DNA of 63,718 bases, counting the filler, from Olpidium bornovanus S191 (taxonomy: Eukaryota > Fungi > Olpidiomycota), in assembly GCA_017911155.1 (NCBI GenBank). It is 25 parts of 25 records of this genome, joined end to end, with 100 filler letters (N's around TTAATTAATTAA, not from the genome) between each part and the next. Parts side by side here need not be neighbours in the genome. Positions count along the whole stretch, not along the records: positions 61,897 to 63,718 come from JAEFCI010000257.1; 24 more parts are not named here. The stretch is one strand, 5' to 3'. Of this stretch, positions 61,897 to 63,718 are shown piece by piece (position 1 is the stretch's first letter; each line of letters starts with the position of its first letter). The position numbers were made by a program, and so were the translations under genes. The notes under the pieces are model-generated. The model saw only the letters and a program-made list of their open reading frames with translations, ran no database searches and was not told where the DNA came from.

Positions 61897-63350
61897 CGAC
61901 GGGCGGCGGGAGTTGCCTGCCGACGGGCGCCGAGGATACCGGTTTCCGAAATGGTCGGCTGACGGGCCGTCAGCCCTACACGAAAAGCGGCGCAGTTTCC
62001 GGTGGCACACCTCCATGGCCTGCAAGAGATGTTCTGCCAAGTCCTCCTTCGCTTGGTAGAAGCACTCCCTCTGGGGGATGATATGGTAATCATGGCCTGC
62101 AGTTTCGACGTATAATCAGCAAGCTCACTACTCGCCAGACACAGCAAGGAGATTCGGGATTGAAGCGCCGAAGGACCCGCAAGGCGCATCAAATCTGCGC
62201 GGAACGAACCTGGGCGACCGTGTGTTGGCAGGTATTTCTCCAGAAGCCCCCTCATCAGTTTGCGGGTGAAGTTGCGCCTGTAGGAGCCTTTGAACACGGA
62301 CTTCGCATTTACGATGAAAATCCTGAAGTCTTTGTCCCTGTTAAGAACGATGCCCATTCTTTCGCCTTTCACATTGGCTAAACAAAGAATAATCGACTCA
62401 GGGCCAATGCCACGAAGAAAGGAAATTTGGAATGCCGCCGACGGAAAACGAACTTCTCACGTCTGGGAATTTCGTCCCAGGGGCGGACGCGGAGGGTGAA
62501 CAGCATCGGGTTCGTGGCCGGGTCAACGCCGTTCTCCTTCGGCTGGGATGTCTTCACTGCGGCGGTAACCCAGTCGTTGCTGAAGCCAAAGAATTTCTCG
62601 ACGTCGTCCCCGTGCGGGGAGACAACCTAGATAATAAAGCGCCGCCTCAAGAATCAGCTACCCGGCGGCAACAGCGTGATACGCCCGGCCTATCGACGGA
62701 ACTTTCGTTTCCCGCCTGGAAGAAGCCAAGCGAACTGGGAAGGAAGTTACCTTGTTCTCCCACTTTGCCTTTACGCGCTCGTCAACTCTGCGCTTTTCAT
62801 CTTCTTTGGTAATCCCAAAAGCCTCCTCCCGGGTGCGAACCCAGCGTTCTTCAAACTCGCGCACAAGCTTGTCGACGTGCGGCGGCGATTTCCACCACGG
62901 CTGGACGGCGCACGGTGGCCGTCTACCCGCCTCGCTGCCGGAATCCCCCTCCTGCCGGCTCTGCGGAACGGGTTCAGGCCCACTCGGGGCATCGCATTTT
63001 GATGGCTGCGTCCGGGGTTCAGATCCCGCGGGCACGCCGAGCGAGACTTCGCGGGATTGCGGAACGGGCGGCAAATTCCTCTGCTGCACCGAAGCATGGC
63101 GGTCCACGAACGAATCCGAAGTCGCAGAACCCGACAGAGGGGTCGGTGGCGGCGGCGTCGGCGTCGGCGGCGGCGGCGGCGGTGTGCCGGCCGGATCAGC
63201 CGGCGACGGGGCAGGTTCCGACGCCCGCTGCGGTTGCGGGCAGCGGCAGAGGCGGGAGACGCCGAAGGAGCGACGGGCAGCAGCAGCCGGGAGGCGCAGT
63301 GGACGGGGGAGGAGGAGCGCAGACGGGGGCGCGGGTGCGCGAACGGGCAT
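61897..63350 (-). CDS. rnpA: Bacterial-type RNase P protein (RnpA)-like protein with mitochondrial-type presequence; 4 exons, 3' truncated
   Basis: Exons 63350-62751, 62626-62461, 62377-62210 and 62096-61897 join in frame through GT-AG introns. They give RIFIVNAKSVFKGSYRRNFTRKLMRGLLEKYLPTHGRPGHDYHIIPQRECFYQAKEDLAEHLLQAM, which aligns with the RnpA beta2 / RNR helix / beta3 / alpha3 core. Confidence 0.7.
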
Positions 63351-63662
63351 GGTCCTCCCGCGGAAAAGGGCGGAGCAGCTTCCGGGAAAGAAGCAATGGC
63401 CCGCGCTGTTTACGGAAGGCTTTCAGTTCGTTCCGTTGTCCAAAACAGAATAAATAATCAATCAAATTGGTTTCCGTGCGCACCCCCCCCCCCCCCCCCC
63501 CCCCCCGCCCCCCATCCCCCGGGGCTTCCAGGTCGCGAAGGATTTCTACCAGCTGGGCGCGTACTCGAGAGCCTTGCTGTGCATGCAGCAATACGTGCGT
63601 GGTGGTTTTCTTTTTTTTTCTTTCTTTTTTTTTTTTTTTTTTTTTCCCCCCCCCCCCCCCCC

Positions 63663-63712
<50 letters not shown>

Positions 63713-63718
63713 ACACCA

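Follow-up and report, generated by a model that had tools for sequence, protein, structure and literature searches.

The window analysed here was a stretch of 63,718 nucleotides (nt) from the Olpidium bornovanus S191 assembly (GCA_017911155.1), and the piece under study, positions 61897–63718, was the entire 1822-nt contig JAEFCI010000257.1. This contig carries a nuclear gene that is expressed and spliced and that belongs to a eukaryote in the O. bornovanus zoospore preparation. The gene encodes a protein of at least 378 residues, and its core can be taken with good confidence as a true RnpA-derived sequence, that is, a strongly diverged homologue of RnpA, the bacterial RNase P protein, because profile, profile–profile and language-model evidence agreed on this family. 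We somewhat favor the view that the whole protein would be imported into mitochondria and act there as a subunit of an RNase P with an RNA component; each part of this reading (import, binding to RNA, activity and the partner RNA itself) is inferred.

The contig piece had a G+C content of 61.5%. Four minus-strand exons of 600, 166, 168, and 200 nt joined in frame to give 378 stop-free codons, and the reading frame was still open at the contig edge (61897). Exon 1 (62751–63350, codons 1–200) and exon 2 (62461–62626, residues 201–256) were defined by in-frame joining and by RNA contigs. Exon 3 (62210–62377, residues 257–312), which holds strand beta-3 and the RNR helix, was placed by joining, RNA contigs, the profile and the ESM Atlas, and exon 4 (61897–62096, residues 312–378), which holds strand beta-4, helix alpha-3 and a basic tail, by joining, RNA contigs and the profile. 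All three introns were of the GT..AG type: intron 1 (62627–62750) spanned 124 nt, intron 2 (62378–62460) 83 nt, and intron 3 (62097–62209) 113 nt. An earlier note, made from the sequence of this DNA, had proposed these four exons and three introns and had suggested RNA as a check on them. Two RNA runs, each from a separate study, yielded transcript contigs of the gene: one of 1267 nt in X2 (word depth 107) and one of 1203 nt in X4 (word depth 14.8). These contigs contained zero mismatched letters and omitted precisely 62627–62750, 62378–62460, and 62097–62209, which confirmed the splicing in two independent runs. Because three spliceosomal introns are removed in the RNA contigs of both, the gene is a nuclear eukaryotic one. 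The X2 contig extended to 63472 and gave a 5′ untranslated region (UTR) with a minimum extent of 63351–63472, at least 122 nt, on the same strand. This region had no ATG, and position 63350 was the first start codon of the transcript.

The RnpA-like core comprised residues 268–344 (61999–62342, minus strand, a span that includes intron 3). It was compared with a panel of 21 RnpA proteins taken from E. coli K-12 and from bacterial chromosomes filed as plasmids in PLSDB, covering Gamma-, Beta- and Alphaproteobacteria, Bacillota, Actinomycetota, Fusobacteriota, and Mycoplasmatota. A bacterial genome scan with E. coli RnpA gave Enterobacterales only, and the diverse panel was assembled from PLSDB instead. 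The local hidden Markov model (HMM) built from the 21 proteins had 118 positions, and the spliced domain scored 16.6 bits against it (E = 2.9e-7 for one comparison), with HMM positions 38–112 pairing with residues 268–344 and two one-residue insertions. This score was reached by none of 3000 composition-preserving shuffles (best 6.8 bits) and by none of 9000 block shuffles that kept the local composition in blocks of 10, 15, or 25 residues (best 9.8 bits); the reversed sequence scored 1.1 bits. The comparison of the core with the RnpA alignment in hhalign gave a probability of 79.8 and an E-value of 1.4e-5 over 71 columns. Smith–Waterman alignment to E. coli RnpA alone had a z of ~4.6, which was matched by 6 of 2000 shuffles. 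The E. coli RnpA string that the earlier note had quoted was correct and is present in the MG1655 rnpA product, and the ungapped pairing with it was reproduced in the Smith–Waterman, HMM, and hhalign alignments.

The language-model searches, which provide evidence of another kind, pointed to the same family. When the features of exon 3 alone (55 aa) were searched in the ESM Atlas, PF00825 was found in all 100 nearest clusters, with a best score of 0.92, and with residues 225–316 it was found in 88 of 100 neighbors. The Atlas model of residues 240–316 matched RnpA clusters with a template modeling (TM) score of 0.55, and no family set found with the 99 nearest Atlas models lacked PF00825; the model of residues 240–316 was of low confidence (predicted TM score 0.30), lacked exon 4, and ended in four residues derived from an intron. 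The ESM Atlas search with exon 4 alone was uninformative. The remaining 12 clusters in the search with residues 225–316 were unnamed eukaryotic ones of 118–169 aa with slightly higher scores (0.89–0.90), and their commonest taxa were Streptophyta, Ascomycota, and Basidiomycota. These clusters could be unrecognized eukaryotic relatives or chance neighbors.

The RNR motif, which in RnpA lies on helix alpha-2, was located at residues 287–298 (SYRRNFTRKLMR; 62250–62285, minus strand), aligned to the bacterial A-x-x-R-N-x-x-K-R-x-x-R columns, and it read S-x-x-R-N-x-x-R-K-x-x-R. In this motif R290, N291, and R298 were identical, and S287, R294, and K295 were conservative changes at the bacterial A, K, and R columns (columns conserved in 71–100% of the 21 bacteria). 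Over the whole core, the residues kept at columns conserved in 70–100% of the 21 bacteria were R274, K281, R290, N291, R298, D314, and L335. Among HMMs built from separate bacterial groups, that of three alphaproteobacterial RnpA proteins scored best (18.2 bits), followed by all non-alpha sequences (12.1 bits), Gram-positive and other sequences (8.4 bits), and Gamma/Beta (5.4 bits). A P-G-H-D-Y stretch before beta-4, common with alphaproteobacterial RnpA, added to their higher score. This hints at an alphaproteobacterial or mitochondrial ancestry, for which three sequences are too few to settle the matter.

The public annotation of this gene hides the domain. When exon 3 was searched against 1.84 billion representative proteins, one real match was obtained, BJ554DRAFT_5398, with 100% identity over residues 257–311; the other matches were three repeat-protein false hits. 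BJ554DRAFT_5398 is the contig's own GenBank model, a protein of 415 aa annotated as "hypothetical protein," and it was the same as the spliced model for residues 1–312 only. From residue 313 it reads through intron 3 and then through exon 4 out of frame, and its residues 313–415 are not real. Intron 3 is thus retained in the GenBank model, and therefore the domain in that model lacks its final strand and helix. The domain truncated at this wrong turn scored 6.4 bits against the local RnpA HMM, which is noise, and the blank result in Pfam described below is therefore explained. The earlier note had pointed out that the introns split the motif and hide it from view; this was supported, and the retained intron adds to it. 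A single retained intron in a public gene model was sufficient to hide the domain from profile searches, and similar genes may be overlooked in other draft fungal genomes. An RNA run from 2012 contained some intron words (0.66 of the words in a query that combined intron 2, exon 3, and intron 3), and an intron-retaining transcript may have served as a guide for the GenBank annotation.

As to function, the protein would be imported into mitochondria. Its residues 1–44 (63219–63350, minus strand) are presequence-like by composition alone: they contain 8 Arg, 8 Ala, 6 Leu, 9 Pro, and no Asp or Glu, the first acidic residue being residue 45, and the maximum hydrophobic moment was 0.63 over 11 residues. 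The Arg-rich, acid-free N-terminus described in the earlier note was thus borne out. By analogy with bacterial RnpA on the catalytic domain of P RNA, the RNR helix would bind the mitochondrial RNase P RNA, and the protein would serve as a cofactor for the removal of 5′ leaders from mitochondrial pre-tRNAs. Fungi, like Amoebozoa, apparently lack PRORP (PMC10941002), and rnpB was found in all sequenced zygomycete mitochondrial DNAs (mtDNAs), often near the bacterial consensus (PMC3790967). For these two reasons, a retained bacterial-type ribonucleoprotein is the most economical reading. Rfam, searched with the 1822-nt contig alone, gave no match.

A number of results weigh against this reading, and its main caveats are that the sequence signal is weak, that no orthologue was found, that the mtDNA is missing, and that the contig comes from a metagenome. 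The identity of the core to individual bacterial RnpA proteins was 12–21% over 75 columns, which cannot support a phylogeny. Pfam and NCBIfam, searched at E-values up to 10, gave no match with each exon or with BJ554DRAFT_5398 (whole, 1–316, 200–316, and 225–316); these queries were single exons and pieces of the GenBank model, and the full spliced core was scored only against the local HMM and in hhalign. The Pfam check proposed by the earlier note was therefore negative on the pieces searched, but the local HMM gave 16.6 bits on the spliced core. BLASTP of residues 200–316 gave no alignment to E. coli RnpA, and a sequence search of the PDB (phmmer) returned noise only, with TRIM25 at an E-value of 0.65. 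AlphaFold2 without an alignment modeled residues 200–316 at a mean predicted local distance difference test (pLDDT) score of 38.7, and a Foldseek search of this model against the PDB and Swiss-Prot models found nothing below an E-value of 0.05 and no RnpA. This model is too poor, and it neither supports nor refutes the RnpA fold, an alpha/beta one with four strands in its sheet and a beta-3/alpha-2/beta-4 crossover. Moreover, the feature search and the structure search with ESM do not count as independent evidence.

At the residue level, the Gly of R-x-G in beta-3, invariant in 21 of 21 bacterial sequences, was replaced by Phe276, and non-conservative changes were found at two further bacterial Arg columns (F292 and E302) and at one Lys column (S282). 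The N-terminal third of RnpA (beta-1, alpha-1, beta-2) was not detected in residues 196–272, which scored −2.4 bits, the level of shuffle noise. In bacterial RnpA, this third carries a conserved R-L and an aromatic residue that lines the leader-binding cleft. The ESM Atlas structural alignment began at residue 240, and some N-terminal RnpA strands may exist according to this model. In the presequence-like region, the many Pro residues (9 of 44) argue against a clean amphipathic helix. Across the database searches, the sole homologue was the contig's own GenBank model, and conservation can therefore not be judged. No homologue was found with the exon-1 open reading frame (ORF), a query probably swamped by poly-Pro words, or with residues 125–200 of this ORF; BJ554DRAFT_5398 residues 140–316 retrieved its own entry only, and the JGI metagenome contigs contained no homologue.

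Here, the resemblance to RnpA could be convergent or due to chance, with a basic helix and an RNR-like motif set in an unrelated fold. The lack of a match in the curated profile libraries (with the exons and GenBank-model pieces), the low identity, and the unusable AlphaFold model would agree with this, and an RNase P-like motif outside RnpA was described for the helicase Hera (PMC2566870). However, the match extends beyond the motif alone, over 75 residues and four secondary-structure elements with two one-residue gaps, none of the 12,000 shuffles came close to it, and the language-model and Atlas structure neighbors were almost exclusively RnpA. Thus, we regard chance or convergence as quite improbable. 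It is also conceivable that the core descends from RnpA and that the protein left RNase P. It would then be a general factor, mitochondrial or not, that binds or processes RNA and in which the RNR helix serves anew within a larger protein. An undetectable N-terminal third with its leader-binding cleft residues, the loss of the invariant Gly, ~255 residues of unrelated sequence ahead of the core, and the fact that no rnpB partner could be shown all fit such a change of role. On the other hand, the retained residues are those of the P-RNA-binding RNR helix, fungi without PRORP require some mitochondrial RNase P protein, and the RnpA copies of the prasinophyte Ostreococcus and the jakobid Andalucia go together with organellar rnpB. 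We therefore consider a departure from RNase P unlikely, and we keep the reading as an RNase P subunit in mitochondria.

Another question, independent of function, is the source organism: the gene is real, and its contig may come from another eukaryote among the roots and zoospores sampled, which were not axenic. The assembly was obtained by composition-based binning of a metagenome, with 29 Mb of 187 Mb kept, from non-axenic zoospores washed off cucumber roots (PMC7865070), and a later study found its completeness low and its quality limited (BUSCO 27; PMC11878562). The contig was merely 1822 nt long with homopolymer runs at one end, and no fungal homologue appeared in the database searches. 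In addition, identical spliced transcripts were found not only in one 2012 run under the first organism label but also in more than 12 runs of several studies under a second, different organism label, with traces in soil metagenomes. When the query of intron 2, exon 3, and intron 3 was used, every second-label run contained exactly 0.41 of its words, which is the share expected from exon 3 alone, whereas the 2012 run had intron words as well, as given above. Two large 2026 RNA runs under the second label had zero reads of the gene. Such a pattern is better explained if the second label names a host or a sample (infected roots, for example) than if it names the genome that bears the gene, and the 2012 run is probably the Olpidium zoospore transcriptome. 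The Ala/Pro-rich low complexity of the N-terminal part also agrees with the reported Olpidium proteome (PMC11878562). Taken together, the run pattern favors Olpidium, or a constant associate of Olpidium, as the source without proving it, and an origin from another eukaryote of the sample seems rather unlikely. Acanthamoeba was considered as a source and set aside; intron words occurred in no second-label run.

Compared with bacterial RnpA (PF00825, COG0594), the core aligned through beta-3, the RNR helix, beta-4, and alpha-3 with two one-residue gaps, and it retained the R-N, K/R-R/K, and R of the RNR motif, the preceding Lys, and the Asp of beta-4. In contrast to the ~115–135 residues of bacterial RnpA, the protein has at least 378, with the core at the C-terminal end. 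It further differs in the undetectable N-terminal third (R-L and aromatic cleft residues), the change of the invariant Gly to Phe, the 12–21% identity, the blank in Pfam and NCBIfam on the pieces searched, and a nuclear gene with three spliceosomal introns. Nuclear bacterial-type RnpA is known from Ostreococcus tauri and other prasinophytes, where the protein functions together with organellar P RNAs and complementation of E. coli was shown (summarized in PMC4919922 and PMC7050145). Both are nuclear genes for a bacterial-type RNase P protein, and the algal organelles use an RNA-based RNase P. The algal function was demonstrated, whereas the protein described here is known from its sequence and transcripts, and it differs, in a comparison by description, in its fungal assembly and its long N-terminal extension.

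Andalucia godoyi has a nuclear, highly diverged RnpA, predicted to be mitochondrial, that keeps most functionally implicated residues, and it has a P RNA encoded in the mtDNA (PMC7050145). The likeness to this protein is again one of description; unlike the present case, the mtDNA-encoded bacterial-type P RNA of Andalucia is documented, and the organism belongs to a different supergroup. With yeast Rpm2, the protein would share its proposed role, that of a subunit encoded in the nucleus for a fungal mitochondrial RNase P that is RNA-based; it differs from Rpm2 in carrying an RnpA-type core.

Of the interpretation in the earlier note, the spliced nuclear gene stood and the core is likely a diverged RnpA homologue; the novelty it implied was overstated, as nuclear RnpA has been published for prasinophytes and A. 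godoyi (PMC4919922, PMC7050145). A full-text literature search of incomplete coverage found no RnpA-type protein reported in fungi and no report that links Olpidium and rnpB. The novelty is therefore that of a nuclear-encoded bacterial-type RNase P protein, known elsewhere, in a lineage without a prior report, and its unusual features, as judged from the sequence, are the long N-terminal extension and the degenerate N-terminal third of the domain. Olpidium is sister to the non-flagellated fungi. That this is the first bacterial-type RNase P protein in Fungi, and that Olpidium still combines an RnpA descendant, encoded in the nucleus and imported, with an rnpB RNA in its mitochondria, is put forward only tentatively.

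Apart from Rpm2 of yeast, what is known of the RNase P proteins of fungal mitochondria "remains scarce" (PMC3790967), although bacteria-like P RNAs persist in many early fungi. An RnpA descendant in the nucleus of this lineage would offer a concrete candidate for this largely unknown protein side outside Saccharomyces. If the reading as a mitochondrial RNase P subunit is true, equally diverged orthologues would be the protein subunits so far missing from the bacteria-like RNase P in mitochondria of zygomycetes and some Dikarya, and the alphaproteobacterial ribonucleoprotein would have survived intact into the fungi, with Rpm2 a later arrival in yeasts. Prasinophytes and Andalucia, the few eukaryotes listed so far as retaining the bacterial protein, would then be joined by another lineage.

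Between the presequence-like region and the core, two further segments were distinguished, both on the minus strand. Residues 45–150 (62901–63218) formed a Pro/Ser-rich low-complexity linker with 28 Pro and 14 Ser in 106 residues and belonged to no Pfam family. Residues 151–200 (62751–62900) formed a charged, Trp-containing segment (9 Glu, 7 Lys, 7 Arg, and 4 Trp) for which no family was found, and Pfam gave no family match for residues 151–255. A CCG/GCC-rich stretch at 63148–63183, which encodes poly-Pro/Thr, had 31-mers common to many other transcripts and showed a depth spike of 552 compared with 107, with several loose ends. This stretch is a common low-complexity coding repeat in the source organism.

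Some observations were made at the two ends of the contig. The X2 and X4 transcript contigs both ended exactly 11 nt past 61897, the genomic contig edge, and this shared stop points to a repeat, or to a branch in the assemblies, and not to the true 3′ end of the mRNA. Homopolymer runs occurred on the plus strand at 63483–63506 (C24) and at 63611–63712 (T9, T21, C17, and C49). The first lies just upstream of the 5′ UTR and the others toward the contig end; in gene orientation they read as G and A runs, and the RNA contig coverage ended at 63472, shortly before the first of them (C24). These runs may be genuine promoter-proximal low complexity or an assembly or sequencing artifact that ended the contig.

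During the assembly of the RnpA panel, dozens of plasmid records in PLSDB were found to be whole bacterial chromosomes of 2–12 Mb with rpmH-rnpA-yidD, mostly without gene tables. Examples of chromosomes labeled as plasmids were NZ_OL790811.1, NZ_CP030101.1, and NZ_LT559118.1.

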